From assembly GCA_977017575.1 (NCBI GenBank), contig CDRNVI010000069.1:372001-436000 (forward strand): a DNA stretch of 64,000 nt. Direction: 5' to 3'. The notes below the pieces were generated by a model. That model was not told the DNA's origin, searched no databases, and saw nothing but the letters and a program-made list of their open reading frames with translations. The position numbers and the translations under genes were made by a program. Positions within the stretch are counted from its first letter, which is position 1. Every line of letters begins with the position of its first letter. The DNA comes from Paramoeba atlantica. Taxonomy: Eukaryota; Protista; Discosea. This document shows, piece after piece, positions 14,016 to 62,062 of the stretch.

Positions 14016-17000
14016 ATTCTATTAGAATTTCCCTGAGTTGGTGATCTCAGGCTACTATTGAAAAGGGAATGTTATGGTCTTTCGGTTTTATATAACAATA
14101 TCTTCATATAGTCGAACGTGTACGAGCTGCCGTCATATGTTAAGAATTTGGGTTTTCTCAAATACCCGTAAATTTAGATTACAAATTTTACTTTAAAGAG
14201 ACTTTAAATATATCTTATAGGCGCAATTCACTCATCCACTTCTCTGCTGGAATGTAGTCTCGGAGCTGCGACACTACCGTGTACGCTGACATTTTTTCGA
14301 TTTCGAGCTGGAAAGCATTGCGCACGCTTTCATATTTAAGTTTCGCTCTTTGTGAGAGAGCCTTCAACAAAGCCTTAGTATCGTCATGTAGAAGGCCGCA
14401 ATCTGTTGCAGCCAGACACTTAAACGAATCGCTATCGACACCCTTCTCAGTAACGTATTTCTTATATTTTCTGTCGGAGACCTGCTGCATAAGGGCAGAG
14501 CTGGTGTGTTTTGCGTAGCTTGAGCAGCACGTATGTACTATTGTGAAGTCGTAGAGTACCTCACCCATGTGAGGCCACATGATGGCCAGATCTGGACCTG
14601 AACGAATACGGCGTGCTTTGCAAGGATGTTGCGCGGCGACATCTGCTGAGATAGTGCACTTACATTTAGTGCAATGATACGAGGAGTAGATGCGGGGTTC
14701 GATCACGCTAGGAAGGCCTGCTTTTGAGCACAACTCTGAGAGATACCGGACGATATGTGAATGTTTGCGTGTGGAGTTCATCCCGGAGCATCGGGAGCAT
14801 CCAGCAACGTGGGGAATAATGGTGGAGGGTGATTCTTGATTAGAACAGCCGGGGCATGTTACTTTGGCCGGTGCCTTAGGCAAGCCAATTCCTAAGCGCA
14901 TCATGAGCGTATATCGGAATAGGTATGGGTTAACGTAGTTGCTGGTGTTTTCGAGGTGGATATTAGCCTCTTTAGTGCGTTTTATGATGTTCGCTGCGGT
15001 GGAGTCTTTCTGTATTTCTGTCAATTGTTTTTCGTGAGCTTGACTCATGATCTTCTTAAGCGATTTGCGGGCCTTTTCTGCGCGGCTCTGAATTTTAGCT
15101 TTGCTCTTGTCATTGCCTTGCGAATCTACCGGAGCTTTATTGGGTTCCAAGTGCTCTTCAATAGATTCTCGGGCTGCTGCGAAGTAGTGCTGCTGTTTCA
15201 GAGTGCAAGAAGTCAGTCCTAATCCACCTAATTTTTGCGGGAGAGCTGCGAGCTTAAGTGCCTGGGCGTCCGCGCCGCACCATTTCTGCAAGACTTCGTG
15301 TACGTGGCTTTCAAAAGAATGTGCCAGACGCCGAGTGGCCTCCGGGCGGTGAACTCTCAGATGATAGTCTTGACGTGGAATTGTACATCGGCGAAGAATC
15401 GCGAGAGAAAGGTTACTGGGGCCCATGAGAAGTAAACGGCGGAAAAGGCATTTATGCTTACTGAGTTTGCGCAGGAGAAGATCCTCTACCACATTATCTT
15501 TCCCGATATAGGCTCCCAGAATCTTGATCGAATCAGTGCAAAGCTTGACGCCTAGATTATGCAAAGAGAACGGTTCGTATGTGGTATTTTTCTGGAAAAA
15601 TTCGCATTTCTGAAAGTTGACGCGTAGATTGAGCTCGCCTGTGATTTCACGTAAGTGCAGGAACGCAGCTTCGAGTGACGGTACGTTTGTAGAGCTGAGA
15701 GTCACATCGTCTTGATATGCTCGTATTTTGACGTCGGGGTATAAGCTTGCGATCTCGCGAATGGGACCGTGTAAAAGTGCACAGAAGTACATGGAGGATA
15801 ATGATGAGCCTTGTCGAATTCCTGACGAACTTTCGATGGTCGCGAAAAGAGCGTTGTGTGCGAAAAACAAAAGTTCGGATGAGAGGCCGTATTCAAGGTA
15901 AAACAGTCGCATAAAAGGTTTGAACACAGGATTCTCTAGTAGTGCTTGTGTTATGGCGTCGCGTCGTGGAGTGTTGTATGCGTTCGTGAAATCTACCGTA
16001 ATCAATGCGCATCCATCCTCGTATTCTTGTAGTAGCTCATGCACTATTGATTCACATGCGCTCTTGTGGAGAACACCCCGCTGCATAGGCGAAAAGTATT
16101 TTCGTAGTGCACATTCATGTCGCTCGAGTAAAATGGATCCGCAGATTTTTAGGATCGTCTCCCCCATGGCGACTGGCCGTATACCGTTTTGTGGCTTCGG
16201 AAGAGCAATAATTCGGCAACGAGTGAGACGCTTCCGCACGCTTACAGGCACGTCGCCATTGATAACGTCGCGAATCATATGGCATAATGAAAGGCATGCT
16301 TCTTCATCTTCAACAAGCAAACGCATCATGCTCTCACTAAGCCCGCTTGGTCCCGGAGATGCCCCTCGCGCAAGTTTTTCGACTGCAAGGCGGAGTTCTG
16401 ATTTATCTACAACGCCGATCCGTGGAAAGTCAGCTTCCGGAATTTCAATACTAGGCCCCTCGGGATGCAAATCGCGAAGTTTCTGTAATTTTTCATGCGC
16501 TGTAAGATTGGAGACCTTGTAAACGTTGTCGAGAATTCGAGTGGCTTTCCCGATGTTTCCAGCTCGAGCGGTCGTTAAAGCATTCTTGATCGAGCGACGG
16601 TCGACGCCAAGTTCTTCCCTTTGTTCTATGCTGAGTGTTTCGTTTTTCGATGGATCCGCTTGTTTGTTTATGTGTCCGACTCGTTGATTTTGCCGAGAAA
16701 GTTGACGAATAGTAGCGAGCGAGTCTCTTGGTGCGTTCAAAAATTTATCCCAGATAGCTGTTTTCTCAGAGTCAAGTTCTACCGATGGATACCCACGAAG
16801 TATGGCTCGGAAGATGGCGACTACATGGATTGAAAAAGATGAATCAATGGGTACCATCGTGGGCAGCGGCTCGAGATCACTTTGACCATTTTCATCGCTA
16901 GACACGTTGTCGGCGTGTTCTTCTAAATTCCGCGTAATTGTTTCGACTTTGATCAGTTTCGTGGCTCGTATCGAACAGATTCTGATCCTGTTTGTGTGTG

Positions 17001-17780
17001 GAAGATAAAGAAAGCCACTGGGACCTTTGCTGCCTTGAGCTGGATTGTAAGAGATTTTGACTTTGACCATTCCTTTTCGTGAGGTCCTACCTACGACGAT
17101 GCCTTTCGACGTGTAATTTACCGTGTCTTGTCGGAAGCCCCACTCGATAACACATTCCGTGCCTTTGCCCCACTTTGCTACCATGTTGTGCACATGATCC
17201 GGTGCTTTGGAAAGAGCACTTCTGTTTGCCAGATCTGCTATGACCTCGTTATCGCTGTCAAGAGACATATCTTCGCTCTCGTCTTCGTAATGTTCCTCAT
17301 CCGAGTCAATATCCGGTGTTGTCTCTTGTTGTGGTTCTTGACGTGGCTGTTCGTCGAAAGATGTCAATCGAAAGGTCTTAGGCGTGATTTTGATTTTGAT
17401 TTTGTCGCTGTGCGCACTGTTCTGTTCGCCGTGATCAGCCCAGTCTTTTGGCAGAGGTGTAGATCCGACGATTCGAATTCTTGGGGTTTTCTTTGGTTTG
17501 GACAGTTCATGCGTAATTCGGCCATCTCCTGTGGTGAGATCGGGTAAGTCTGACGCCGTGTGATTTCCGGAGCGTTCCTTCATTCCCTCTTTCCGCGAAA
17601 CTTGTAGAATCTTGATCATTGAGCCGTCTGAGGAAACCGTTGTTGTGCTCTTCTTTTCTTTGCCACGCTTTCCTTTTTCACGTGATTTCTCTGTTGTACG
17701 ACTTGTCTTCAGGTCTGAATTTTTGCTCACGACTGAGCGGGAAGGGCGTGTCATAACGATTGAGATAATAAGAAAATAAA
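14016..17780 (-). mobile_element. Non-LTR RLE element I-b (CRE/SLACS-like); its SL cap lies at 31748-31764 and its 3' tail at 10288-10334
   Basis: The whole unit 10288-31764 is flanked by the 8-bp duplication ACTACATC (10280-10287, 31765-31772). Confidence 0.88.
14215..17754 (-). CDS. I-b polyprotein, 1179 aa, intact: beta-barrel module, RT, Zn knuckle, RLE
   Basis: GASPGPSG, RPVAMGE, TVDFTNAYN, GIRQGSSLSSMYFC, AYQDD, LPQKLGGLGL, CPGC...H..GC..C, RSGPDLAIMW...YDFTIVH. Confidence 0.92.
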   Translation of the reverse strand: MTRPSRSVVSKNSDLKTSRTTEKSREKGKRGKEKKSTTTVSSDGSMIKILQVSRKEGMKERSGNHTASDLPDLTTGDGRITHELSKPKKTPRIRIVGSTPLPKDWADHGEQNSAHSDKIKIKITPKTFRLTSFDEQPRQEPQQETTPDIDSDEEHYEDESEDMSLDSDNEVIADLANRSALSKAPDHVHNMVAKWGKGTECVIEWGFRQDTVNYTSKGIVVGRTSRKGMVKVKISYNPAQGSKGPSGFLYLPHTNRIRICSIRATKLIKVETITRNLEEHADNVSSDENGQSDLEPLPTMVPIDSSFSIHVVAIFRAILRGYPSVELDSEKTAIWDKFLNAPRDSLATIRQLSRQNQRVGHINKQADPSKNETLSIEQREELGVDRRSIKNALTTARAGNIGKATRILDNVYKVSNLTAHEKLQKLRDLHPEGPSIEIPEADFPRIGVVDKSELRLAVEKLARGASPGPSGLSESMMRLLVEDEEACLSLCHMIRDVINGDVPVSVRKRLTRCRIIALPKPQNGIRPVAMGETILKICGSILLERHECALRKYFSPMQRGVLHKSACESIVHELLQEYEDGCALITVDFTNAYNTPRRDAITQALLENPVFKPFMRLFYLEYGLSSELLFFAHNALFATIESSSGIRQGSSLSSMYFCALLHGPIREIASLYPDVKIRAYQDDVTLSSTNVPSLEAAFLHLREITGELNLRVNFQKCEFFQKNTTYEPFSLHNLGVKLCTDSIKILGAYIGKDNVVEDLLLRKLSKHKCLFRRLLLMGPSNLSLAILRRCTIPRQDYHLRVHRPEATRRLAHSFESHVHEVLQKWCGADAQALKLAALPQKLGGLGLTSCTLKQQHYFAAARESIEEHLEPNKAPVDSQGNDKSKAKIQSRAEKARKSLKKIMSQAHEKQLTEIQKDSTAANIIKRTKEANIHLENTSNYVNPYLFRYTLMMRLGIGLPKAPAKVTCPGCSNQESPSTIIPHVAGCSRCSGMNSTRKHSHIVRYLSELCSKAGLPSVIEPRIYSSYHCTKCKCTISADVAAQHPCKARRIRSGPDLAIMWPHMGEVLYDFTIVHTCCSSYAKHTSSALMQQVSDRKYKKYVTEKGVDSDSFKCLAATDCGLLHDDTKALLKALSQRAKLKYESVRNAFQLEIEKMSAYTVVSQLRDYIPAEKWMSELRL

Positions 17781-37890: not shown

Positions 37891-37936
37891 CGATAAAGAT
37901 ACAGTTTCTGTACCTTGTTGTTTCTGTACCTTGTTG
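37891..37936 (+). other. SL exon (30 nt) plus nested SL relic (16 nt)
   Basis: cgataaagatacagtttctgtaccttgttg|tttctgtaccttgttg. Confidence 0.88.
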
Positions 37937-37969
37937 ATTTCTTTTCCCTTTATATCATCCTTACGCCCT

Positions 37970-38820
37970 ATGGTGACAACCCGGTCCAAAGCTAAGCAGG
38001 GTACCGACTTCCAGCACGAAGCTAGCGCGCACAAACTTGGATCTTGGGATCAATTTGAAGCCAATAAAGATCTAGTCGAAGGGGTGAGTACATTCGAGGA
38101 GAGTCTTTATACCACGCCACTTCCACCTGATCCCTCATCTGAATTATTGGAGCGCGCTGACAAGATTGCCTGCGACATTAAGAACTCTACAGAAGGCGAA
38201 ACGCCAGACACAGGACACCAGAATGCTACCACCGAAGAAGAACTGTTCTCCAGTGTCCGCCCGACGGAAAGCCTCGAGTTCCAATTCGAAGGAGCCAATT
38301 CCTCTTCACTCAGCCAATTAAAGTCCTCTAGCAAGGCTGTGAAGGAGAAGTACGAGCGCCATAACCGCAGGGTAGGCTGTGCCGAATATGACTATGCTGA
38401 TAACAGGCTAGTTTTTCCTGATCTCACGCCTCCTGATCTTCGCTTCTCAGTAAAGGGTAGCAGTAAAGGCCGTAAACAGAAGAAACGCCCGAAGGGCATC
38501 AATCTTTCTCAGCTGGATGCAGTGTCCGGGGCCGACAGCGAGGAACGCGACAATATAGAGTCCAGCGCGAATTCACCCGGGCCACGCACTCATGCCACCG
38601 GAGTCATGAAAAGCCCGTCTATCAAATTGTCCCAAAAGGAACAGAACACTAACACCCCCACGGGTAAGCGTAAACGTCACGTGCAGGTGTCGAAACCAGG
38701 GCCACGCGATTCCTCAGATACCGAAAGGCTCAATCAACCCCCCAATACCACTCCAGAAAAGCCACCTACAGTCAATGGAAACACGCGGAAATGTCCTTCT
38801 CAGGGATGTGCATGGCAAGG
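37970..38820 (+). pseudogene. II-a N-terminal coding segment (TRSKAK motif, LsmAD-like motif, first half of a C2H2 finger)
   Basis: MVTTRSKAK...SWDQFEANKDLVEGVSTFEESLYTTPL...ERADKIACDI...CPSQGCAW; colinear with the II-b N-terminus. Confidence 0.85.
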
Positions 38821-39317
38821 GTTATGATCATACGCTCGTGGCGCAGAGATACGTCTCTCTGTGTGACGGCCGATACCATCGGCGCATGACCCGCATACGA
38901 CGGGTGTCACACAGAGAGTGGAGTGCGAAGTAGGAGACGAGACGCCCATCGGTCATGCTACAGCACGTATAGCCATGGTTCATGCTGCAACACGGTCAAG
39001 CCGTGGGTTCATGCTGTCAGATGGTCTATCGTGGATCATGATGCATCATGGGGAGGTCCGTTACCGCCGCACTCGCTACAGCATGTAGGGAGAGAGGGGT
39101 GCAAGTTCGCATCCCCTATACACGCATACAACGTGTCCTCCCGCTGTAGCACGCCCAGTGGTCCTCAAGGGAGGCCACCATGGCGCATAGCTCCCGGGAG
39201 AAGAAAGCACGAGAAGGAGAGAGCCGGGGAGGGAAGAAAGCTCACTCGAAGAGAGCGAGCCGGGGAGGGGTGAAGAGTGCGAAGTGCGTCCCCTACTTCC
39301 GCGACAAAGAGGGACAG

Positions 39318-39431
39318 TTTCAGCTAGCCGGCAGCCGGAAACGGGCATTTAAAAGTAAGAATACGCCCGTTTCCGGGAAAAGAAAGGAAGGGCTAGCAAA
39401 ATGTACCAACAAGGTACAGAAACTGTATCTT
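39318..39431 (-). ncRNA. Probable spliced-leader RNA gene fragment (3' 25 nt of exon, GT donor, structured intron); 3' boundary approximate
   Basis: AAGATACAGTTTCTGTACCTTGTTG|GTACATTTT; TGTACC-ttgtt-GGTACA stem across the donor; nested stems GCTAGCC/GGCTAGC (7 bp) and CCGGAAACGGGC/GCCCGTTTCCGG (12 bp). Exon resembles the kinetoplastid/diplonemid SL core ACAGTTTCTGTAC..TTG. Confidence 0.72.
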
Positions 39432-42400
39432 GTTGTGCCTCACGGGGGCCAATGGCAATCCTTTTATAACCACGTATCCCACAGACACGGGGACGAGGTG
39501 CCTGATACCTGGTGCCTGATACCAAGGAGGGACGTTTCCGATGCAGGGATTGCAACAGGCACTACAACCTAAGCAAACAGGTCACCCATGCCGAAAACTG
39601 CGCTTTCCGCTGCTCTTCTCCCCCACCTATCTCCGAACCTACACAGACAGGGGGCGACCCGAGGGACAACCCTGCATTTTTTGCCGCACAAGCCGTCGCC
39701 GAACCCCTTCCCTCCCTGGCGTCAATCTGTTCGACACCTCTCAACACATGCAAAGACATTCCCAACAGCTGTCGCCAGGGGTGGGCGAAAGTCTTCTGTG
39801 AGTGTCTCTCTTCCGCTGTACGAGACAATACAGTTGAGGCCTGGACTCTTCTCGCCATGCTACCGAAATGCGTACTACCGGCACCTCATCGTGGGGGGAG
39901 CAGGGCAAAACTATCGTACGCCTCGCACGTTCGGAAGTGTCTCGCCCGGTGGTCACGGAAAGAATTTCTCCCCCTTTGGAACGAAACAATTGCGAGCCTA
40001 CAACACAAAAAACGCGTCGCACAAGCACAGAGTCCGGAGGACGAGATAACCAAATCTGCTATGCGAGCTGAAAGACTCGTTCGCGACTCGGAACTATCTC
40101 GAGCTATGGCTGCCCTAACCTCTGAACCAGTAGCCCCGTATGACGATGATACTTACACTAAACTCCAAGCTAAGCATCCATCCCGACTCGCTACGTCGGT
40201 GAAACCCCTCAGTTCTTCGACGGAAATGGGACCAAAACCACTTCGAGCCACAGAGGAAGACGTAACGCAGGCTCTTGCAACTTTTCACCGGGGGTCATCG
40301 GGTGGCGCTTTTGGGCTACGCCCTGAACACGTACAAGTGGCACTAGAGTACCACCATGACGGCCGTACGGATCCATTGGGTACACTGACCGACTTTACGA
40401 ACCACATGCTCGCGGGGCAAGTGCCGCTCGAAGTTCAGTGCTATTTCGCTGGAGGCCGCTTATGCGCGTTAAAGAAAGGGGAGCGCGACGTGCGGCCAAT
40501 AGCGGCCGGAGAGACGCTCCGTCGCCTGGTGAGCAAAGTCGCCTGTCTCTCCGCCAAAACAACAGCTCGTAAGCTCTTCAAAGGACACCAATACGGTGTG
40601 GCCACTCCAGCAGGGTCTGAGCGCGTCATCCATCGATGCAGACAGACATTCGATTCTCACGTTGATGACAATGACTTCATTCTATGCAAAATTGACCTGA
40701 AAAACGCATTTAACCATGTCTCACGGGACTGGATCATTGCCCTTACTCGCGAACACTTTCCCGCTCTCAGTCACTACGTAGATTGGTGTTACTCTTCGGA
40801 CAGCCTACTTACTTTCGGAACACGCACCATTCCGTCTTCTGAAGGAGTGCAACAAGGCGACCCCTTAGGTCCTCTCCTTTTTTCCCTGGTTCTGAGAGAA
40901 GTAGCGGCGGAAATTCACGCAGTAGCCCCAATGCTCGATTTGAATCTGTGGTATCTGGACGACGGGGTGCTGGCTGGATCATCTGCTGATGTGCGGCACG
41001 CATTCGACGTGCTGGAAATCAAAGGACCACAACGGGGACTCCATATCAACGCCGCTAAATGTGAACTCGCCTTACACCCCTCATCATCTCCTCGCGCCTC
41101 CGTTTTCCCTGACATCCCTGGCCCGAATAAAAATTTCGAGGGTAATTTCAACATTTTAGGTAGCCCAGTCGGATCCACTGAATACTGTCATAAATTCCAT
41201 TTGGACAATGCCTTCGAACTGGCCCAAGATTCCCTAACCGCTATAACTTTGCTCGAGGATCCCCAGATCGCTCTCTCCCTCATCCGGCATTGTACAGGCT
41301 TCTGCAAGATGGTCTACTCTCTCCGTACCACCCCGACATCTGCACTGCAAGATATTTGTCGACGCCTGGACGACACTGTTCAGTCCACTCTCGAAAACTT
41401 TTTCCACCCACTTGGCGATGACGCCCGGCGACAGACACAACGAGACAAGCGCTTCGGAGGGCTAGGGCTCCGTTCAGCAGAGGAACATTCCTCTTCTGCT
41501 TACGTGGCCTCCGTGGCATTCGCATCAAGGAAGGATGGCTGGGCCCCCACCGAAGCGAAAGGTTTCGAAGAAGCAGTGAGCGATGTCAACAATCGCGCTG
41601 GACTAAATCTGGTAGACGGCGAAAATGGCACAATACCCAAGAGCATGGTTGTGTCAGATCGTTCCCTCTTTAGTACTATCGAAGCGAGCGAATCTAGAAA
41701 TGAAGCGGTAGTTCCCAGACAACGGGATCTCAGTCACTCGATCTCTTCCCAGGAATACAACAACGCGCTTAATACCGCTGACCCGCGGACGAGGGCCCGA
41801 TGGATCTCTGAAACGGGGGAAGGAGCGTCGGAGTGGGCATTTGTTTTGCCTTCCAAGAAGAACGGTCACGCATATACCCCGACAGAGTTCCGGATGCTGG
41901 TACGCTGGTGGCTTGGGGAGAACATATACCCCGGCACCCGACCTTGCCCCATGGACAAATGCACGCAGCCGCTTGGTCCAGAGGGGGATCACGCGATGTC
42001 GTGCAAAAGCGGGCATGGTATCATTTCCCGACACAATGCTCTGGCAACACAGTTTGCGGCGGAGTGTTCCAAGGCCGGGCTCGCCCCCAAACGAGAGGTC
42101 AGCCTGGGAAACAAGGGTCCGGGGGGCACCCTCACTAGGCCTGCAGATGTCTTTATAGACAGCCACCTCGGTCGGTCCCTTGTACTCGACTTCGCTGTCA
42201 CCCATGTCCAGCAACAAAAGTATACGGACACAGTCCGTGACGCTAACTGGGTGACGGCGGGGTCGTTCGCGGAACAATATGCCACCGTAAACAAGAGCAT
42301 GCAACGCGCAGAGGCGACTGCAGCACACTTTAAGTTCGGAGCTATGGTCGTAGAATCCTACGGCTCGTGGTGTCCCAGCGCAATGTCTGTTCTCCGAGAG

Positions 42401-42577
42401 GTCGCAGTAGCTAGGGCGGCTAAATCGGGCAGTGACATATCGAAGGGGGCGGCCTTACATCAGATTCTCACAGCTCTGAATGTAACACTGATGAGGTCGC
42501 AGGCCCGAATGCTAGTCTTGCGATTACCCGCAACGGGCCCCGACCTGGCTCTCCTGGGGTACGGGAAGGAAGAGTAG
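39432..42577 (+). pseudogene. II-a remainder: Zn fingers, RT, CCHC knuckle, RLE (ORF 39512-42577 open)
   Basis: RPIAAGETLRRLVSK, KIDLKNAFN, GVQQGDPLGPLLFSL, WYLDDG, CPMDKC..GDHAMSC, RPADVF..LDFAVTH. Confidence 0.9.
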
Positions 42578-43182
42578 CAAGCGGCCAAGAGGTGGAAAAC
42601 CTCGTGGGCAAGGGTGGGGCGGTAAGTGTCGTGGCTGCTTTGCTTGGTTCCTGGTTCTGCAGGGGGGTTGTGGCCAGCGTCGGACGGTCCTGCGGGCAAT
42701 AAGGTCCGGGGTAGTGAGAGAGGTGGCAGGTTGAGGTTTGCTCGTTTCGGGTTTGCTTGGGCATAGATTGCTTGTTTTTATTGTTATTGTTTTTATTGTT
42801 CTTATACTTACGGGAGATCGAATTGCTAGTTTTGGGCTCCAAAATATGAAATTGCTAATTTGATTGCTTGTTAAAAAAAAATCTTATATAAAATTGATAG
42901 ATAAAAAATTTTTATTATTTTATTATATTTTTATATTATGCTTTTGAAATAGTTTGCGCGCTATATACATCCGGATAAAAAAAAAAAAAAAAAAAAATTT
43001 TTTTTTTGCGCATCTTAGGGGGAGAAGCCTTTCGGGTCCGTAATACGGACGCGTTGGAAGGCTTCTTTCACGACTTTAACGTCTTGTTGTAGTATACAAT
43101 GGAAGTATACAATGCTGCTGTATACTCAAAATAATAGTTTCACGTGTTTTCCGTTCCTTTATTTATTCACATGTTACTCAAA

Positions 43183-44730: not shown

Positions 44731-47700
44731 TCAAAAAGCGCAAATATCGTCCCCATGGCTTTGGCTCAGGTACTTTCTGAGCTGGCCTAGGAGAATGTTT
44801 CCATTCATCTCCTGCAAGAGAAGTATGAAATCGTTTTCCACCTTGCTGGGCTCAATAGAAATCTTTTCCGCCAGAAGCCGTAGCAGCTCCCGAGTTCGGG
44901 CGTGCAACGAGCCACTTGACAGCACCGGTAAACAGGCGAATTGCTCCTCGGCGAACATATTCGATGAGACGTATTTGGTGTTTTTCCGCGCGATCGCATC
45001 TTTGATTGCCTTCGCCGGTGTTGTTCCCGCAAGAGATGGTGCCAGATCGTGTACGACGGTGAGATCATAGAAGATTTCACCTGTCGCCCAATAAATAACC
45101 AAATCGGGCCCTGAACGGTGTAGCGTGCTGCCTTTGCATGTCGCAATGTGCTCTCGCCGACGTTCTTCTCGGATCACCTCGGAGCATGATGTGCACACAT
45201 ATGTGGAGAATTGCCGTGGCTCTAACTCACAAGGAATACCCGCACGCAGACACATATTATGAATATAGCGTACTAGTGCGTTGTGCTTTACCGTTGTATT
45301 CATTCCCGCACATCGGACGCAACCCGGAATATGTGTAAGGGCAGTGGCACTGTTTAGAAGAACTCTGCATCCGGGGCAGGTGAGAGATTCGGGAAGACGT
45401 GGATGGCCCATTCCCAGGCGGGGCATTACTGCTAAGGTGAATTTCCGCGACGGCACGAGTCGCTCGTTTGCTTGTATCCATGTATAACTACCCTTCTTCG
45501 TTGTAGCGTCCATGATTCTTGCAAATTTCTTGTTCTTCCGAAGGCGCTCCTTCACTTCTTTGTGCATCTTGACTTCGACTGCCGTCATCTCAGCGACAGG
45601 TGCAGTGTCCGACTCGCTAGGCGTGACTTGAGCTGAAAGGAATTTTGGCTGCTCAAAAGCCACACTGCGCGACGCCTGGTACGCGGCCGCTCGGAGTGCA
45701 TCAGTAGAAGGCAGGCCCAGCCCACCCATACGAAGGGGAAGCCTTGCCCAGTCCAGTTGATCTTGCGTCATTGGTCCGAACCATGTCTTCAGAACTTTAT
45801 CAACTTCGCCGTCAAACTCCTTTGCCATCGCTTCAGAGGAGTTCGGTGTGTGTGTGCGAATATGAAAACGATGACGAATGTTAACACATTTAGAGAGCAG
45901 GATAGTAGATACGTTGCTCGCTCCCATCTGACTTAACCGACGGAAAATTGTTTTATGTTTCTGTAGCTTTTCTAGTAGTAGGGGATCTACCTTTTCGTCT
46001 TCTCCCACGTAAGCGCCGAGAACCTTGATTGCGTCCTTCTCTACGTTGACTTGCGCCATTCGCAGAACTTCCGGAATTTCCGTGCCCTTCGTTCCTCCGA
46101 ACCACACACATTTATGATTTGCCATTTGCATGTTTCTTTCATTCAACAAATCCCACACTCTATAAAATGCCTTCGTTAGGAGTGCAGGATCATCCGAAGC
46201 AAAGTTTATGTCGTCTATGTATGCGAATATTTTGATCGAGGGAAATTCTAAGGCAAGCGTTGCGAGGATGGGTTGCATCATTGTACAGAAAAGAAGCGTA
46301 GAAAGGGGAGACCCCTGTCGAACTCCTGCTGTGCTGAAAACTTTGTCGTGTAACTTTCCGTCTGATCCAAAATACAGCAGCTCCGACGGCTCGGCATATT
46401 GATCGTGAAAAAGCCTCCAGAACGGTCGCAAACTAGAGAACGCGAAGAGTGCGTTCGCGATGTCTTGCCTCCAAGGAGTGTTGAATGCATTGCTGATGTC
46501 CATTGTTAGGATTGATTGTCCTTCCTGATAGAGTTTATGTAGGCGGTGTACTACTGTTTCACATCCTGATTTAGTTGCCACTCCGAATTGCCACGGAGCA
46601 AAAATCGGCGGCAGACAATGTTCATATTTTTGCAACAAGACGATCTCTGCTAATTTTAGAAAAATCTCCCCAACAGCAACCGGGCGCACGTCCCTTCCAT
46701 TTGCTTTCGGTATGGCGACTAACCTTGCCCTCTTCAACCTGTCCATCACGTCTTTCGAGATCGCTCCATTTACAACATCCAGTAACATGTGACACAGAGC
46801 TGTGCAACAGATTTGATCGTCGAGCAACAGTCTGACTATACCGTCCGTTGTCCCAGATGGACCGGGTGCCGCGCCCTTGGCCAATCGACGACCTGCCTCG
46901 CGGAGTTCTTCCGTTGTTATGATCGCTGTCTGTGTCGCGTCTGCTGGTAATTCGAAAACGCAAGGAGCCGCAGGGTGCAGTTTTTGGAGTTTGGCAAATG
47001 TTTCTTTGTCAGATAATTTGTTGATTACCGTGACCTGATCCAGAACTTTTGCCGCTTTTGAGATCGACCCCTCGAGCACAAGGCGTGTGGCTTTTTTTAT
47101 CGCTCTGCGATCAGCGAATTGCCCTTCATCCGCGTCCTTCTCTCTTTCTTGAAGCTCGGATTGCGTAAGCACTGGGCGACGTCGTCGACTGCGCGCTGAC
47201 TGCTCTCTTAATTCTGCCAGCGAATATTTCATCGCGGAGAGCACCCTGTGCCATATCCGACAGCGGTGAGCATAATCACAATCTGCATAATCCCTCATAA
47301 GATCGCGGTAAACCGACACCACGCACGGTATAAATTCAGCGCTTACGTTTCTGACTGTAGGAATAGGTTCGTAATCCAAATCTTCGACTGTTTGCTTCAC
47401 AGACGGTATATCTTTTGCAGACGCGACTTGCTCGTCTTGAGCGCCTCTATTCAAAACGTTAATCCATACAATTTTATAGATGCGCACACTTTCCTGAGCA
47501 GGAATCGATCCCGCGAAGCTTCGTTCCTTGCAGTGTCCTTGTAGGCCGTCGTATTTTACAGTCAGTCTGCGTACACCTGCCCTTGATCTCGCCGTTTGAA
47601 CTGTGCCAGCAGAGATGTTTAACAATACTTGTTGGTCGAAACACCACGCTACCACGCATTCGTCGCCTTTCCGAGCATTTCTGGTATGTGACTCCACTTC

Positions 47701-48534
47701 TTGCGGCGTCAATGGGAACTCAGTCTCAGGTTTCACGTTTGCGCGCATGTCGTCCACAATTTGCGTTAGTCGGTCTGCATTGTTCGTCGAATCTACATTC
47801 ACTTCATCAAGCGGCAGGGGCGAGGGTATGCGGCCTGGGCTGGGTGATTGTCCTTTCTCCTCTGACGCGGGTGAGCTGCAGTCGTAGAACTCTTCTGGCT
47901 GAATTTCAGGTTGCGCAACTGGTTTGGACTTGGAGGCTGTTGTTTGCGCATCCGGCGCAGGGTCCGCCAATTGGGCTAAAGAAGGCAGTGTATTTGATAT
48001 CAAGGTTGCAATTGGTTTCATGGTCTGAATCACGGTGCTAGCTGTAGGAAACGTGAATCGCGAGCCGGTCGGTCGACGAATGCGAATGTGTGAATTGGTT
48101 TGTTTCGATGCTTCAATGGCTTTTTTATCTTTCGCTTCTTTCCGTTCCTCAGCTCGTCCTTCGTTCCGTTCGTTCAGAGGATGCGACGGAGATTGCGATC
48201 CAGGTGAAATGCAAGATTCTGATGAGGGTGGCGGCGTCGACGATGTCGGGGATTTCGAAGATGGGGAATTCCGTGGTGGCGGCAAAGGAGTCTTTTGTGG
48301 AGGGAAAACGAAAGCCCTCTTTTTCTGCAGGGTGGCTCGCAACCGCTCGGAGTGCTGTGTGTTTGTCGGTTGCGGTAGCGGTAACGGGACCGGTAGCTCT
48401 TGCGACGAAGATGCTTGGGGCGGAAACGGTCGCGGTTGCGGCGGAGATGGTTGCGGCGTAGACGGGGACGGTTGTGGCGTAGACGGTCGCGGCGAGGACG
48501 GTTGAGGTAGTAGTAGTAGTAGTAGGCAGGTTGG
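44731..48534 (-). CDS. Non-LTR element I-c polyprotein; frame open to about 48534, native start missing (slightly 5'-truncated)
   Basis: Beta-barrel module, GAAPGPSG, GVRQGSPLSTLLFC, AYIDD, LPLRMGGLGL, Zn knuckle, HRSGPDLVIYW..YDLTVVH; T-run about 44614-44625. Confidence 0.88.
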   Translation of the reverse strand, partial: PTCLLLLLLPQPSSPRPSTPQPSPSTPQPSPPQPRPFPPQASSSQELPVPLPLPQPTNTQHSERLRATLQKKRAFVFPPQKTPLPPPRNSPSSKSPTSSTPPPSSESCISPGSQSPSHPLNERNEGRAEERKEAKDKKAIEASKQTNSHIRIRRPTGSRFTFPTASTVIQTMKPIATLISNTLPSLAQLADPAPDAQTTASKSKPVAQPEIQPEEFYDCSSPASEEKGQSPSPGRIPSPLPLDEVNVDSTNNADRLTQIVDDMRANVKPETEFPLTPQEVESHTRNARKGDECVVAWCFDQQVLLNISAGTVQTARSRAGVRRLTVKYDGLQGHCKERSFAGSIPAQESVRIYKIVWINVLNRGAQDEQVASAKDIPSVKQTVEDLDYEPIPTVRNVSAEFIPCVVSVYRDLMRDYADCDYAHRCRIWHRVLSAMKYSLAELREQSARSRRRRPVLTQSELQEREKDADEGQFADRRAIKKATRLVLEGSISKAAKVLDQVTVINKLSDKETFAKLQKLHPAAPCVFELPADATQTAIITTEELREAGRRLAKGAAPGPSGTTDGIVRLLLDDQICCTALCHMLLDVVNGAISKDVMDRLKRARLVAIPKANGRDVRPVAVGEIFLKLAEIVLLQKYEHCLPPIFAPWQFGVATKSGCETVVHRLHKLYQEGQSILTMDISNAFNTPWRQDIANALFAFSSLRPFWRLFHDQYAEPSELLYFGSDGKLHDKVFSTAGVRQGSPLSTLLFCTMMQPILATLALEFPSIKIFAYIDDINFASDDPALLTKAFYRVWDLLNERNMQMANHKCVWFGGTKGTEIPEVLRMAQVNVEKDAIKVLGAYVGEDEKVDPLLLEKLQKHKTIFRRLSQMGASNVSTILLSKCVNIRHRFHIRTHTPNSSEAMAKEFDGEVDKVLKTWFGPMTQDQLDWARLPLRMGGLGLPSTDALRAAAYQASRSVAFEQPKFLSAQVTPSESDTAPVAEMTAVEVKMHKEVKERLRKNKKFARIMDATTKKGSYTWIQANERLVPSRKFTLAVMPRLGMGHPRLPESLTCPGCRVLLNSATALTHIPGCVRCAGMNTTVKHNALVRYIHNMCLRAGIPCELEPRQFSTYVCTSCSEVIREERRREHIATCKGSTLHRSGPDLVIYWATGEIFYDLTVVHDLAPSLAGTTPAKAIKDAIARKNTKYVSSNMFAEEQFACLPVLSSGSLHARTRELLRLLAEKISIEPSKVENDFILLLQEMNGNILLGQLRKYLSQSHGDDICAF

Positions 48535-57560: not shown

Positions 57561-57818
57561 AAGGGGGGGAAGTAAGAATGTAAAAAAAAAGAATCAACTC
57601 TAAAAAAAAAGAATCGCTCGGTGGCATCTTGGGGAATGATTCATCGAACTCGTATGATTTTTAGCAGAATTTAGTGGATCATGGAGGTCTGGAGGTGATA
57701 ACGGTGTCAGAGGTGGCAGCGACGGCGGTGGCAACGGCGGTGGCAAATCTGGCGATTCTGGGCTCGGGCGTGTAGTTTGCGTGGTGATGATTGCTGAAAG
57801 TTGATGGCTCTCAGTTTG

Positions 57819-60800
57819 TTTTTTTTTTTTTTTTGCAATTAATAAGGGGGGGAGAAGTATGAATCGCGGCATTGCCTCTATATTTTGACCCAGTAGACGA
57901 ACCAAGTACATAGTAGGTCCATTAGGGGGGTATATGAATTTAAAACAAGCAATCAAATTAGCAATTCTTTTTATTTCCACAGGAGTATATTTTGTTTTTC
58001 TTTTTTCTCAGCCCAAAACTAGCAATTCAATCTCCCCTAAGTATATACTACAAACAAGAAACAGTAAAAATTAAAACAAGCAATCCATGCCCAATCCATT
58101 CGCGCGTTCCGGACCGGGTCTTTCGACCTCTCCACGGCCTGACTTGTGGACCCTTCCCTTGTTATACGGGAGGGCGCAGGCGCGGGCCTGTGTCGACAGC
58201 GACACGGTCGCGAAACAGGATGCTGGCCGACGGGGAGGAGATTCACTACCCGTGTACTACCTCACTTGGGGTACCTAGCCCTGACGGACTAGGCGTGAGC
58301 ATAGACTCTGTCGACTCGACCAGCATCCGGGCCAGAGGTATGTGGCCCTGCGCATGGCGTCTTCGCCATGCCCCTAAGCGCCTTCAAGGGGGGGCGTTAG
58401 GGTCACTGACAACTATCCTGGAGACCATCATCCGAGCCTGGGAACGCATCAACGTGACATTAAGCTCTTTCAAAAGGATGTTTCGTGCCTGAGTGTCTGT
58501 TAAAAGACCGTTCGACGCGTTGGCACGTAACGCTCCCACCTTCCACAGGACCGTCAAGGCACTTCTGCTCCATGAGCCGAAGGACTCAACAATCATCGCT
58601 GTGAACAGTAACTGAGCTGCTTCCGCTTCCTGGCGCTGCTTCCCTTTCGTTTCAGAGAAGTGTTCAGCAAAAGACCCCGCAGCCACCCAGCTAGCATTAC
58701 GGACTGAGTCCAAATACTTCAATTGCTGTGCGTGGGTGACTGCGAAGTCTAGAACCATGCCACTTCCCAGTTCATAGTTGGGAAGAAAAACATCGCCTGG
58801 TCTGGTGAGACCTCCTCCAGGTCCCCGATTTCCGAGACTTTTTTCCCTTTGCGGAGCCATATTGGCCTTGCTGCAGAAGGAGGTGAACTGTTGGCAGACC
58901 GCATTGTGGCGGGTGATGAGGCCGTGCCCGTTCTTACACATCAGAGCGTATTCCCCATTTTTTAGGAGTGGTAAGTCACATCCTTTTGCTGGACAAGGTC
59001 GATCCTCTGGATAGACATCCATGCCCAACCACCAGCGGGATAAGGTACGGAACTCTGTGGGAGTGAAAGCGTATCCCTTGGTCCGCGACGGAGTCACGAA
59101 AGCCCAGCTCCCGGCACCTTTTCCGGACTCTGATATCCATCTTGCACGTGTGCGGGGGTCAGCCTTCTCGTATGCAGTGTTAAATTCTTGCTGGGAAATG
59201 ACTTGGCTGAGCTGTTGCTGTCTAGGGATAATCATCTCCGGTTCGGCCGTCTTCTCTGATCCCTTTTTATTCTGCGTCCGCCGAGGGCGTTTTGTTTGCG
59301 AGGACAAGCTATGACGCAGATCAGAATCTGTGCGAGGATTGTTTTGTTTGGGAGTGCGTCCTGTGCATGGGTCCACAAGCGCTGCGCCTGCTTTATCGTT
59401 TACGTCTTGCACGGAGGTAGTAAATCCTTGAGCTTCCAAGGGGTCCCAGTCGTCCATGTCGGCGGCATGAGCGACAGATGAAACGTATGCCGCCGTTGCG
59501 TGCAGTGTCGACGATCTGAGACCGAAGCCTCCGTGGCGCTTCCTGCGCAGTATTTGATCACGTGCGGGGGGGTCCAGGGGAAAAAGTGCCCACTCTACAG
59601 CCGTCATGACAGAGTCGTCTAGTAAAAAGCAAAGATGGGTAAGGGCCTGTGGGGGTGTAGTTCGGAGGGCGTATACCATCTGACAGAACCCCGTGCATTG
59701 ACGGATTAGAGCACTGGCCACTTGGGGGTCTCCTATTAAACCTATGGCGGCTAGGGTCTCACGTGCTGGGTCGATGGCGTGCTGCATCAGGAACTCCGCG
59801 CAGTGCTCGTCCGACCCGATCGGGCTCCCAAGGATATCGAAGTTCCCGTCGTGCCGGATTTTCGCCTTTGGGATCTCGGGAAAAAGCGTTGTGAGATGAG
59901 CCGAGGCAGGTGGCGTTATGATTTCACTTTTCGCAGGATTCAAGAAAAGTCCGCACCGGGGGCCAACTTCCGAAAAAACGTCCACCGCCTTTCTGACCTC
60001 CACAGCCTCTCCCATAAGAACCCCATCGTCGAGGTACCACAGTTGCGAGTCAAGGTTTGATCGGGATGCTATCTCTTCCGTCACCTCAGAAAGCACTAGA
60101 GAGAATAAAAGTGGGCCTAAAGGATCACCTTGTTGCACGCCTTCGGCTGAAGGGATGAAATTGTTTCCATACGTGAGGCAACTCGGACTTGAGTAGCACC
60201 ATTCTACCCAGGGCGAAAGTTCCGGAAAATGTAGGCGCGTGAGAAGAGCGAAGACGGGTCTGCTGACGTTGTTAAAAGCGTTTCGCAGATCAACCTTGCA
60301 GAAAACCAGCTTGTCGCTCCCCATGTTGTTGAGCATAGTTTTCCGACAGAGATGAATCACTCGTTCGGACCCCGCAGATGCGGCAACACCGTATTGGCGT
60401 CCACGGAATAACGTTCCCGCCTTCTCCTTTACGGCGAGGCATGCTGCCTTGCTTACTAGGCGCCTTAGGGTTTCGCCCGCCGCAATGGGCCGTACGTCGT
60501 CTTCGCCTTTCTCCAGAGCGCAAAGTCTAGCTCCTGCATAGGACTGCTGAACTTCAGGCGGCGCCTTTCCCTCGAGTAAGTGGTTCACGAGGCGTGTGAG
60601 AGCTGAGAGAGGACTTACGTTTTTGTCCTCGTGTTCCAAAATAGCCGACTGGAGATGCTCAGGACGGAGGCCCATTGTACCGGCGGAAGACCCCCTGTGA
60701 AAGCTTTGAACCGCATTCCTGACCTCTGCTTCTTGCAACTGTAGAGGGGCACCCTTAATCGGCGGTAGATCTTCCTCGAGGGGATTTTCGTGGGGCTCTG

Positions 60801-62062
60801 GGTGTTTTTCCAACAGCTTGGCAAGGGTCTCCTCGTTGTCCGGGGCCATGGGAGCTGCAGATAGGGCGGCCATTCCTCTAGAGAATTCCCCCTGACGCAC
60901 CAAGAGCTCTGCTCTTATTGCCGCTCTATCTTCGTCACTTTCTGGGTTCCTGGACTTCGAGCGTTTTCTCTCGCCATCCTTCAGGGCTTGGTCCCAGAGG
61001 AGAAGGTAGTCTCCACCGAGCCAGAGCTCCATGCGTTTTTCCACGTATGTGGAGTACGATGTGTGCCCTTTACGACCGCCACGGTAAGGGGCCGGGAGAA
61101 CGCACTTCGGAAGCATCGCGAGGAGGGTCCAGGCCTGCACTGTGTTTTCTTTGACAGCGGATGTTAATGCTTCACTCAAAATTCTGGCCCACAAGAATCT
61201 GCAGCAATGGGGGACGTCCTTACAGGTGCTTAAAGGAAGTGAACAAACTGAGCTAAGAAGTGGAAGTGGATCAGCTGGATGCTCTTCATTTATTTTCTCC
61301 GAAAAAGACGTCGGCATGGGCGGCGTTAGTGATCGAACGGGTTGGTTTCGTCCTTTACAGTGCTTAAGGTGAGAGATCTGTTTGCTTTTGTCGTAATGTC
61401 GGATGCAATCCTTGCAAAGGAATCTACCTTCCTTTTCCCACCAATCAGTCGAAATATTTTTACCATGTCGGTGAGCTACATGATTGTAGAACGCTTGCCA
61501 TTGCCCTCCGTGTGGGGGAGTCTTCCAGGTGCAACCTGCCGCTGGGCATTCACGTTGTATGGTGTATTGTGGAGTGGAATTCGGTGTTTTGCGTTTCGGA
61601 GTCTTGGTTGCAGGTGAAGCGTTGGTGTCAGGATTCGCTTGAGGCTGTGTCATGTTTGTTCGTATGACGAGGGAGTGATTTGTCTCCTCATTGTCTGTTA
61701 CCTTCCCCGTGTCTGGCGTGGGTTTCTCTCCGTCTATCATGATAGCTCGTCTTGTCCAGTATTCGGGCACATTCTCGGGAATAGGGGTGGTGTAAAGGAG
61801 TTCATTATACGTGCTTCTGCCAGAAATCAAGTGCGCGTTCCCGGCGAATTGATCCCAGTCTCCAGCGTTATGAGATTTCTCTTCCTGGGCAAAGGAGTCA
61901 TCTTCCATGGGTAGCGCTTCTTCATCGAAACGTTCGTCGTATGACAACGCGAGACCCAGGTTTTTCTGGCTGGTCATAGAAGGAACCGCGTACCTGGAGA
62001 AAAGTGAAATAAGGAAAATAATTCAACAAGGTACAGAAACTGCATCTTTATCGTTAAAGAGT
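57819..62062 (-). mobile_element. Group II element II-b, full length: 39-nt SL, 5' UTR, ORF, about 550-nt 3' UTR, poly(A)
   Basis: SL (a)ctctttaacgataaagatgcagtttctgtaccttgttg at 62062-62024; T-run 57819-57834. Confidence 0.92.
58384..61977 (-). CDS. II-b polyprotein, 1197 aa: LsmAD-like motif, C2H2 and C2HC fingers, RT, knuckle, RLE
   Basis: DWDQFAGN..STYNELLYTTP; CPAAGC..HVAHRH; CKDC..HLKHC; GVQQGDPLGPLLFSL; WYLDDG; RPGDVF..LDFAVTH. Confidence 0.92.
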   Translation of the reverse strand: MTSQKNLGLALSYDERFDEEALPMEDDSFAQEEKSHNAGDWDQFAGNAHLISGRSTYNELLYTTPIPENVPEYWTRRAIMIDGEKPTPDTGKVTDNEETNHSLVIRTNMTQPQANPDTNASPATKTPKRKTPNSTPQYTIQRECPAAGCTWKTPPHGGQWQAFYNHVAHRHGKNISTDWWEKEGRFLCKDCIRHYDKSKQISHLKHCKGRNQPVRSLTPPMPTSFSEKINEEHPADPLPLLSSVCSLPLSTCKDVPHCCRFLWARILSEALTSAVKENTVQAWTLLAMLPKCVLPAPYRGGRKGHTSYSTYVEKRMELWLGGDYLLLWDQALKDGERKRSKSRNPESDEDRAAIRAELLVRQGEFSRGMAALSAAPMAPDNEETLAKLLEKHPEPHENPLEEDLPPIKGAPLQLQEAEVRNAVQSFHRGSSAGTMGLRPEHLQSAILEHEDKNVSPLSALTRLVNHLLEGKAPPEVQQSYAGARLCALEKGEDDVRPIAAGETLRRLVSKAACLAVKEKAGTLFRGRQYGVAASAGSERVIHLCRKTMLNNMGSDKLVFCKVDLRNAFNNVSRPVFALLTRLHFPELSPWVEWCYSSPSCLTYGNNFIPSAEGVQQGDPLGPLLFSLVLSEVTEEIASRSNLDSQLWYLDDGVLMGEAVEVRKAVDVFSEVGPRCGLFLNPAKSEIITPPASAHLTTLFPEIPKAKIRHDGNFDILGSPIGSDEHCAEFLMQHAIDPARETLAAIGLIGDPQVASALIRQCTGFCQMVYALRTTPPQALTHLCFLLDDSVMTAVEWALFPLDPPARDQILRRKRHGGFGLRSSTLHATAAYVSSVAHAADMDDWDPLEAQGFTTSVQDVNDKAGAALVDPCTGRTPKQNNPRTDSDLRHSLSSQTKRPRRTQNKKGSEKTAEPEMIIPRQQQLSQVISQQEFNTAYEKADPRTRARWISESGKGAGSWAFVTPSRTKGYAFTPTEFRTLSRWWLGMDVYPEDRPCPAKGCDLPLLKNGEYALMCKNGHGLITRHNAVCQQFTSFCSKANMAPQREKSLGNRGPGGGLTRPGDVFLPNYELGSGMVLDFAVTHAQQLKYLDSVRNASWVAAGSFAEHFSETKGKQRQEAEAAQLLFTAMIVESFGSWSRSALTVLWKVGALRANASNGLLTDTQARNILLKELNVTLMRSQARMMVSRIVVSDPNAPP

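Follow-up and report, generated by a model that had tools for sequence, protein, structure and literature searches.

The R2 retrotransposons, among them R2Bm (8gh6) and R2Tg (9dou and 9nl3), encode in a single open reading frame (ORF) N-terminal zinc fingers, a reverse transcriptase (RT) and, behind it, a CCHC motif with a restriction-enzyme-like endonuclease (RLE) of the PD-(D/E)XK type; they target 28S rDNA and carry no LsmAD domain. The CRE-clade elements of trypanosomatids (CRE1/CRE2, SLACS and CZAR) are also RLE-type elements without long terminal repeats (non-LTR) and are joined to spliced-leader (SL) sequence; none of them is known to carry an LsmAD domain. Here, we analysed 64,000 nt of the Paramoeba atlantica assembly GCA_977017575.1 (contig CDRNVI010000069.1, positions 372,001 to 436,000; in the following, the window), which are crowded with retroelements and hold two related elements, II-a and II-b. 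Both share the single-ORF layout of R2, yet they are SL-associated, end in poly(A), and start with the Ataxin-2/Pbp1 domain LsmAD. An initial annotation of the window had proposed this last feature, and Pfam matches, homology to the PBP1 protein of the host and a look-alike search now agree with it.

LsmAD is the characteristic feature of the Ataxin-2 family, and a 2026 survey of chimeras within this family makes no mention of reverse transcriptases or transposons (PMC12898128); our literature search likewise found no paper describing LsmAD in a retrotransposon. The isolated domain is poorly folded according to NMR spectroscopy as well as small-angle X-ray scattering and does not bind RNA, while it helps the adjacent Lsm domain to fold and to bind RNA in cis (PMC11898529); its deletion merely lowers the association of Atx2 with its targets (PMC7946432). 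In trypanosomes, PBP1 belongs to an MKT1-LSM12-XAC1-PABP2 complex whose members, when tethered, raise mRNA level and expression, and the way in which XAC1 joins this complex was left unresolved (bioRxiv 10.1101/2020.03.02.973057). RLE-type elements themselves being known, what is new is an RLE-type non-LTR retrotransposon with a host-derived LsmAD accessory domain and, furthermore, an MLLE-bearing sister clade from another spliced-leader organism.

Results

The N-terminal block of II-a and II-b

Translation of II-a (37970-38824, plus strand) yields a protein containing GSWDQFEANKDLVEGVSTFEESLYTTPLPPDPSSELLERADKIACDI / AHKLGSWDQFEANKDLVEGVSTFEESLYTTPLPPDPSSELLERADKIACDI, in which W26 lies at 38045 and the codon of I70 ends at 38179; for II-b (58384-61977, minus strand), the protein contains GDWDQFAGNAHLISGRSTYNELLYTTPIPENVPEYWTRRAIMI / KSHNAGDWDQFAGNAHLISGRSTYNELLYTTPIPENVPEYWTRRAIMI, W41 lying at 61857 and the codon of I81 ending at 61735. 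The positions originally quoted for the two blocks are thus right within one codon or a few bases. The homologous block extends past the quoted motif, with a second conserved part of the form TPDTG...EE..(F/H)S.V; the stretches quoted, 38045-38190 in II-a and 61734-61857 in II-b, both fall inside it. Scanned in all six frames with a profile of LsmAD domains from elements and host, the window shows exactly two such blocks, those of II-a and II-b.

Against the Pfam family LsmAD (PF06741; curated gathering cut-off of 25 bits), II-a scores 32 bits (E 1.7e-7) and the copy L038 27.1 bits, whereas II-b stays below the cut-off both as a whole protein (13.9 bits) and with its N-terminal 126 residues (20.8 bits). 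The profile comparison suggested at the outset therefore bears out the assignment for II-a and falls short for II-b. In BLASTP comparisons with host PBP1, II-a is 40% identical over 82 residues (E 1e-11) and II-b is 54% identical to the LsmAD domain over 59 residues (E 7e-17); against a profile of element and host LsmAD domains, II-b reaches 127.7 bits. A language-model look-alike search (Atlas) with residues 12-110 of II-a returned LsmAD clusters first, with a score of 0.91. The II-b block, for which Pfam alone would be insufficient, is an LsmAD domain because it is homologous to that of the host and of the other elements.

The likeness to the LsmAD domains of Ataxin-2, Pbp1 and trypanosomatid PBP1 lies in the signatures WDQF..N, STY.E.LYTT and EE..(F/H)S.V. 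In contrast to these proteins, the element domain stands alone at the N-terminus of an RT protein, without Lsm, PAM2 or a long Q/P-rich tail, and its second half is shortened and carries the element-specific motif TPDTG. Indeed, the SM-ATX (Lsm) domain had no match in any element protein, LsmAD starting 17-110 residues from the N-terminus; a pattern scan found no PAM2 motif in 12 subfamily representatives, and MKT1-binding HNPY motifs were absent from the element proteins scanned. The AlphaFold2 model of the element LsmAD (predicted local distance difference test, pLDDT, 64.5; predicted template modelling score, pTM, 0.24) shows one confident helix at residues 57-72 and is mostly of low confidence elsewhere. 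Such a model is compatible with the flexibility reported for human LsmAD. A sequence search of the PDB found no LsmAD structure.

R2-like architecture, poly(A) and spliced-leader heads

The II-b ORF encodes, in this order, LsmAD, a poorly conserved linker, two zinc fingers, RVT_1 and a C-terminal domain. As had been noted, the block lies upstream of the zinc fingers and in frame with the RT, within a single ORF of 1197 amino acids. II-a is interrupted by an insertion; a copy on another contig that is 99.4-99.7% identical to it (L036) has one open frame of 1348 amino acids with LsmAD (33.2 bits) and RVT_1.

The C-terminal region of II-b was modelled by AlphaFold2 with good confidence (pLDDT 86.5, pTM 0.86). 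The best Foldseek match of this model is the R2 protein 9dou (E 3e-6, template modelling score 0.61), followed by 9nl3 and 8gh6; the top seven matches are all R2 proteins, the first six with E values of 3e-6 to 5e-4 and the seventh with 2.5e-3, and PD-(D/E)XK endonucleases rank after them with non-significant E values of 0.2-1.3. The C, H, P-D and D columns of the endonuclease region are invariant, and the best solved-structure sequence matches of the RT are again R2 proteins. Since both the RT and the C-terminal model match R2 proteins best, II-a and II-b are assigned, on the strength of this model, to the RLE-type (R2-like) single-ORF non-LTR retrotransposons, with only ~16% identity to R2 in the endonuclease region. 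Both end in A-runs (57818-57834 in II-b, from about 42873 in II-a) and are without long terminal repeats.

At their 5' ends, both elements carry SL copies, which directly follow the poly(A) of the upstream element, so that head-to-tail chains are formed. The sequence CAGTTTCTGTAC stands just upstream of the ORF in every LsmAD element locus that was fetched; the leader end ...CAGTTTCTGTACCTTGTTG was not found as a string in the literature searched. Set against the CRE clade, the elements share the RLE type, spliced-leader hosts and the SL association, but here the SL exon sits at the element's own 5' end, as if it had been copied from a trans-spliced mRNA.

Copies and subfamilies in the genome

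The initial annotation had made its case depend on other intact copies in the genome, and the motif is present in them, so that this test does not refute it. PF06741 gave 151 matches in the 45.7-Mb genome; about 90 of them exceed the cut-off, and the majority sit in open frames of 1190-1480 amino acids. A profile built from the element domains (A1) returned 321 candidates; 150 of these were scored, all at 113 bits or more, and 148 of the 150 are elements. The genome thus holds at least 148 LsmAD-bearing element copies in at least 12 subfamilies. Twenty full-length copies, picked via their LsmAD match, represent 11 subfamilies (12 with II-b) that are 48-82% identical overall, and all have the block; WDQF is replaced by YDQF in one of them. 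In a second search, which started from the endonuclease end and in which positions were cross-referenced, intact frames of the families of 1195-1215, 1271, 1281, 1291, 1302-1361 and 1402 amino acids have an LsmAD match at the expected upstream distance.

One endonuclease match (contig C43, 729594-730403, minus strand) lies in an open frame of 2186 amino acids; no other copy of the clade comes near this length, and two elements may have been fused or read through here.

Conservation, selection and RT phylogeny

We calculated column conservation over the 12 subfamilies and the ratio of nonsynonymous to synonymous substitution rates (dN/dS) for each region. The LsmAD block (conservation 0.63-0.71; dN/dS 0.05-0.14) emerges as an island of conservation in front of a linker with many gaps (0.34-0.56; 0.13-0.36), just as the initial annotation had described a conserved block amid N-termini that cannot be aligned. 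The zinc fingers (about 0.75, ranging over 0.74-0.76 across subfamilies; 0.06-0.13) and the RT (0.7-0.88; 0.05-0.11) complete the comparison. The linker between LsmAD and the zinc fingers also varies in length, from ~30 to 190 residues. In the least saturated pair (L035/L041), LsmAD has a dN/dS of 0.11-0.14, as against 0.33 in the linker and 0.11 in the RT. Because synonymous sites are near saturation between subfamilies, the constraint acts on the protein and not on DNA or RNA, and these substitution patterns show that LsmAD is kept under purifying selection in active lineages. Across 18 element sequences and the host (alignment A1), 13 columns are invariant.

An RT tree computed from 49 sequences places every LsmAD-bearing element in a single clade with a support of 100/99, and this grouping fits a single acquisition of the domain.

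Host PBP1 as the likely source of the domain

The Ataxin-2/PBP1 gene of the host, present once on contig C44 and once more on C66, encodes SM-ATX (31.5 bits), LsmAD (49 bits) and a PAM2-like FLNPNARAFTP at residue 297. When 5.8 billion proteins were searched with the LsmAD region of the host, covering those of about 450-1440 amino acids that have short words in common with it, the sole match was an element protein with 63% identity (E up to 10). Among public proteins, residues 1-270 of host PBP1 gave no match at E 0.001 or better, and the II-b N-terminus matched only itself. Element domains and host also share an upstream E..SH..G extension and have HL(V/I) where the canonical sequence is ELFG, whereas the shortened second half with TPDTG, present in all element domains, is absent from the host. 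As the host gene is the closest LsmAD among the 5.8 billion proteins searched, capture from host Ataxin-2/PBP1 is likely, in line with the origin proposed initially. Furthermore, the pan-eukaryotic Pfam model gives the host domain a higher score (49-53 bits) than any element copy (37 bits or less), which makes transfer from host to element the economical direction.

The host PBP1 frame continues for ~139 codons upstream of Lsm (L031:3848-4264) with low-complexity, proline-rich and F-rich sequence, and the true start is probably the ATG at MERILF (L031:4265). A canonical Ataxin-2-type LsmAD, WDQFSANKELFGVETSF, is encoded on contig C163 (L032:4016-4642, minus strand), where it is split by short introns and has the canonical ELFG form. 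We rejected this gene as a donor: C163 is AT-rich (GC content 33.6%, compared with 45-48% elsewhere) and is probably from another organism in the assembly.

MLLE in the sister clade

An exhaustive HMMER search returned 15,815 RT relatives of II-b. Among the best 150 of these, LsmAD occurs only in those at least 50% identical, which all come from one ENA assembly, probably of this same organism; the next relatives, ~42% identical, are without LsmAD and form the sister group on the RT tree (support 94/93). Two of them, P0007 and P0009, which are cluster representatives from metagenome JGI 3300050212, carry an MLLE domain near the C-terminus, C-terminal of the endonuclease (residues 1079-1143 of P0007, L056, 49 bits; residues 1557-1620 of P0009, L055, 47 bits; cut-off 27). 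MLLE is a domain of poly(A)-binding protein (PABP) that binds PAM2 motifs such as that in PBP1, and the best solved match of the element MLLE is indeed the C-terminal domain of PABP (1nmr, E 2.9e-12). The literature searched held no paper pairing MLLE with non-LTR elements. Because the P0009 contig begins (L055:1-14) with TCTGTACTTTATTG, the 3' end of the canonical euglenozoan (kinetoplastid/diplonemid-type) spliced leader, its element would be SL-headed and come from another euglenozoan.

The sister elements are hence the closest RT relatives outside the clade, include one SL-headed contig and carry a module from the PABP-PBP1 network, but their MLLE stands at the C-terminal end and the LsmAD described here at the N-terminus, and they belong to a different organism with the canonical ...TCTGTACTTTATTG leader. 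Altogether, two sister lineages appear to have taken different parts of one host complex, LsmAD in one case and MLLE in the other.

An N-terminal Prim-Pol-like domain (PF09250, 24-27 bits, cut-off 22.8) was found upstream of the RT in four relatives of the same RT clade (P0010, residues 17-136; P0011, residues 3-103; P0009, residues 120-264; P0019, residues 358-479). It is unusual for a non-LTR RT to be joined to a primase-polymerase.

Discussion

With this in mind, we propose with high confidence that II-a and II-b belong to one clade of R2-like, SL-headed and poly(A)-ended elements that bear an N-terminal LsmAD domain of 80-90 residues from host PBP1, without Lsm and PAM2, kept by purifying selection. 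What the domain does there is a different matter. L1 elements have a separate RNA-binding ORF1 protein and recruit PABP indirectly, through PABPC1-dependent formation of the ribonucleoprotein (RNP). The elements described here may resemble L1 in linking the element proteins to the polyadenylated RNA of the element and to its poly(A) tail, which serves for priming, but in them it is the RT protein that bears, by fusion, a scaffold domain of the host. LsmAD would act as a flexible protein-interaction segment that folds on binding, and not as an RNA binder; the low-confidence model with its one helix is compatible with this and with the poor folding reported for LsmAD (PMC11898529). The initial annotation had conjectured that the domain might route the element RNP to granules or recruit partners of Ataxin-2. 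By imitating PBP1, the element domain would engage a host factor normally bound by the LsmAD of PBP1 in a messenger RNP (mRNP) at the poly(A) tail, the kinetoplastid counterpart of which would be the PBP1-MKT1-LSM12-XAC1-PABP activator complex. Through such docking, a freshly translated protein could stay with the mRNA that encodes it, SL-capped and polyadenylated, within a stable mRNP under translation, and could remain close to the poly(A) tail from which target-primed reverse transcription would start; the domain would thereby stand in for the ORF1 protein and the PABP association of L1-type elements. The sister clade would reach the same complex via MLLE, whose ligand is PAM2, and the host PBP1 found here has a PAM2-like motif. 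We offer this docking onto the host PBP1/PABP mRNP tentatively, as the likeliest role of the domain, with a probability somewhat below even; identity and docking mechanism taken together we regard as a slightly favoured explanation.

Several points weigh against this explanation. We know of no LsmAD partner in any organism, and saying that the element imitates PBP1 hence names no concrete target. The partners that have been mapped bind elsewhere, LSM12 to the Lsm domain and PABP to PAM2 (PMC11166328), and yeast Mkt1 to residues 491-549 of Pbp1 (PMC12345631). The argument from MLLE reasons by analogy with another organism and draws on two cluster representatives of one sample. LsmAD may not be universal in the clade, since four families (those of 1287/1316, 1341 and 1505 amino acids, and one of 1171-1183 amino acids on contig C55) showed, among the matches listed, only the zinc-finger part. 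II-b is contained in no recorded RNA run, and what X5, the one possible RNA run, touches is confined to the SL-like stretch 62002-62050. A complex predicted for II-a residues 12-100 with the Lsm domain of host PBP1 (residues 1-110) scored 0.01 against a mark of 0.34; we list this value here, although it counts neither way.

The same domain could serve other ends. It might have an internal structural role, helping the element's own zinc-finger or RNA-binding region to fold or to bind element RNA with no host partner involved, much as LsmAD assists its Lsm neighbor in cis (PMC11898529), and the diverged second half, in which TPDTG replaces a longer segment of the host, suggests a changed function; yet a linker as long and variable as the one found speaks against a fixed intramolecular contact, and the invariant residues are those shared with the host domain. 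We consider this role unlikely. Alternatively, the element LsmAD could be a decoy that competes with PBP1 for a partner and so disables a restraint, such as the sequestration of the element RNP in stress granules or the repression of its mRNA. Such an antagonist would draw on the same origin from PBP1 and the same purifying selection; a domain without its Lsm and PAM2 parts has the look of a dominant-negative fragment, and the number of copies is such that expression could be substantial. However, a decoy has no need for cis fusion to the RT protein, the MLLE of the sister clade looks like a recruiter rather than a blocker, and no expression data were found, and we regard an antagonist as quite unlikely.

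Two further explanations are contradicted by the data. That II-b lies under the Pfam cut-off, and that so short a domain has little predicted structure, could speak for a chance resemblance or for a neutral passenger without function, but this is extremely improbable in view of the E values of 1e-11 and 7e-17 to the host domain, of the many copies over the Pfam cut-off, and of a dN/dS of ~0.1 at saturated synonymous change between subfamilies that are 48-82% identical. A transfer in the reverse direction, by which the host LsmAD was overwritten by, or derived from, an element copy through gene conversion, would accord with a word-indexed search in which the host domain matched no other Ataxin-2 but only an element protein, and with the hundreds of potential donor copies in the genome. 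It is very improbable nonetheless, because it is the host, and not the elements, that fits the pan-eukaryotic Pfam model best and keeps the canonical second half as well as the order Lsm-LsmAD-PAM2.

If docking onto the host mRNP is indeed what LsmAD does, nature has provided in these elements an 'LsmAD-only' construct, from which the partner and the function of the hallmark domain of Ataxin-2 could be learned. A domain cut from Lsm and PAM2, fused to a selfish enzyme and maintained by purifying selection in hundreds of copies argues for a function of its own, and the element LsmAD could serve as bait for finding its partner. For the biology of mobile elements, it shows that an R2-like single-ORF element can acquire parts of a host mRNP scaffold, and the captures of LsmAD and MLLE suggest that the poly(A)-tail complex is a target to which such captures return. 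As a possibility somewhat less probable than not, we suggest that LsmAD is an autonomous and portable docking module, and that an SL-associated lineage repeatedly took parts of the PABP-PBP1 complex, linking a single-ORF element to polyadenylated mRNPs.

Feature coordinates and further elements of the window

Table 1. Positions of the II-a and II-b features in the 64,000-nt window (UTR, untranslated region).
Feature	Position	Strand	Basis or remark
II-a, SL-derived sequence at 5' end: ...CGATAAAGATACAGTTTCTGTACCTTGTTG, then nested partial repeat TTTCTGTACCTTGTTG	37891..37936	+	read directly
II-a, 5' segment (5' UTR and N-terminal coding part)	37920..38818	+	99.4% identical to intact copy L036
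II-a, N-terminal ORF segment	37970..38827	+	285 amino acids, from ATG to a stop made at the insertion
II-a, LsmAD block, residues 17-97	38018..38260	+	PF06741 match at residues 40-97 (38087-38260), profile positions 5-71 of 72
II-a, 615-bp insertion between linker and first zinc finger	38819..39433		gap in blastn alignment to L036
II-a, 3' segment: zinc fingers, RT, endonuclease, 3' UTR to A-run	39434..42881	+	99.7% identical to L036; ORF 39512-42577
II-a, RT core (RVT_1)	40472..41074	+	PF00078, 63.6 bits
II-a, C-terminal CCHC and PD-(D/E)XK-type motifs (RPCPMDKC...H, TRPADVF, VLDFAVTH, ESYGSW)	41939..42370	+	motif positions; homologous to the II-b region modelled
II-b, complete element: SL copy, 46-nt leader as 5' UTR, single ORF, ~550-nt 3' UTR, poly(A)	57818..62061	-	
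II-b, SL exon copy at 5' end, CTCTTTAACGATAAAGATGCAGTTTCTGTACCTTGTTG	62024..62061	-	read directly
II-b, uninterrupted ORF, 1197 amino acids	58384..61977	-	
II-b, LsmAD block, residues 32-104	61666..61884	-	homology to host PBP1 LsmAD and element profile
II-b, two zinc-finger-like motifs (CPAAGC...HVAHRH, FLCKDC...HLKHC), residues 144-207	61357..61548	-	read from translation; no Pfam family assigned
II-b, RT core (RVT_1), residues 490-695	59893..60510	-	PF00078, 57.6 bits; sequence matches to R2 8gh6, 9nl3
II-b, C-terminal 273 amino acids: linker helices, CCHC motif, predicted restriction-enzyme-like endonuclease	58387..59205	-	AlphaFold2 and Foldseek

Rfam gave no match in the window at the gathering threshold. 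The group I non-LTR elements of the window are represented by two ORFs (14218-17754 and 44734-48342, both on the minus strand; 1179 and 1203 amino acids) with RVT_1 only; no LsmAD was found in these elements, and they are distant from the LsmAD clade on the RT tree. The insertion that interrupts II-a contains, near 39400-39440, an antisense SL-like sequence that is followed by GTA and resembles the exon-intron boundary of an SL RNA gene.

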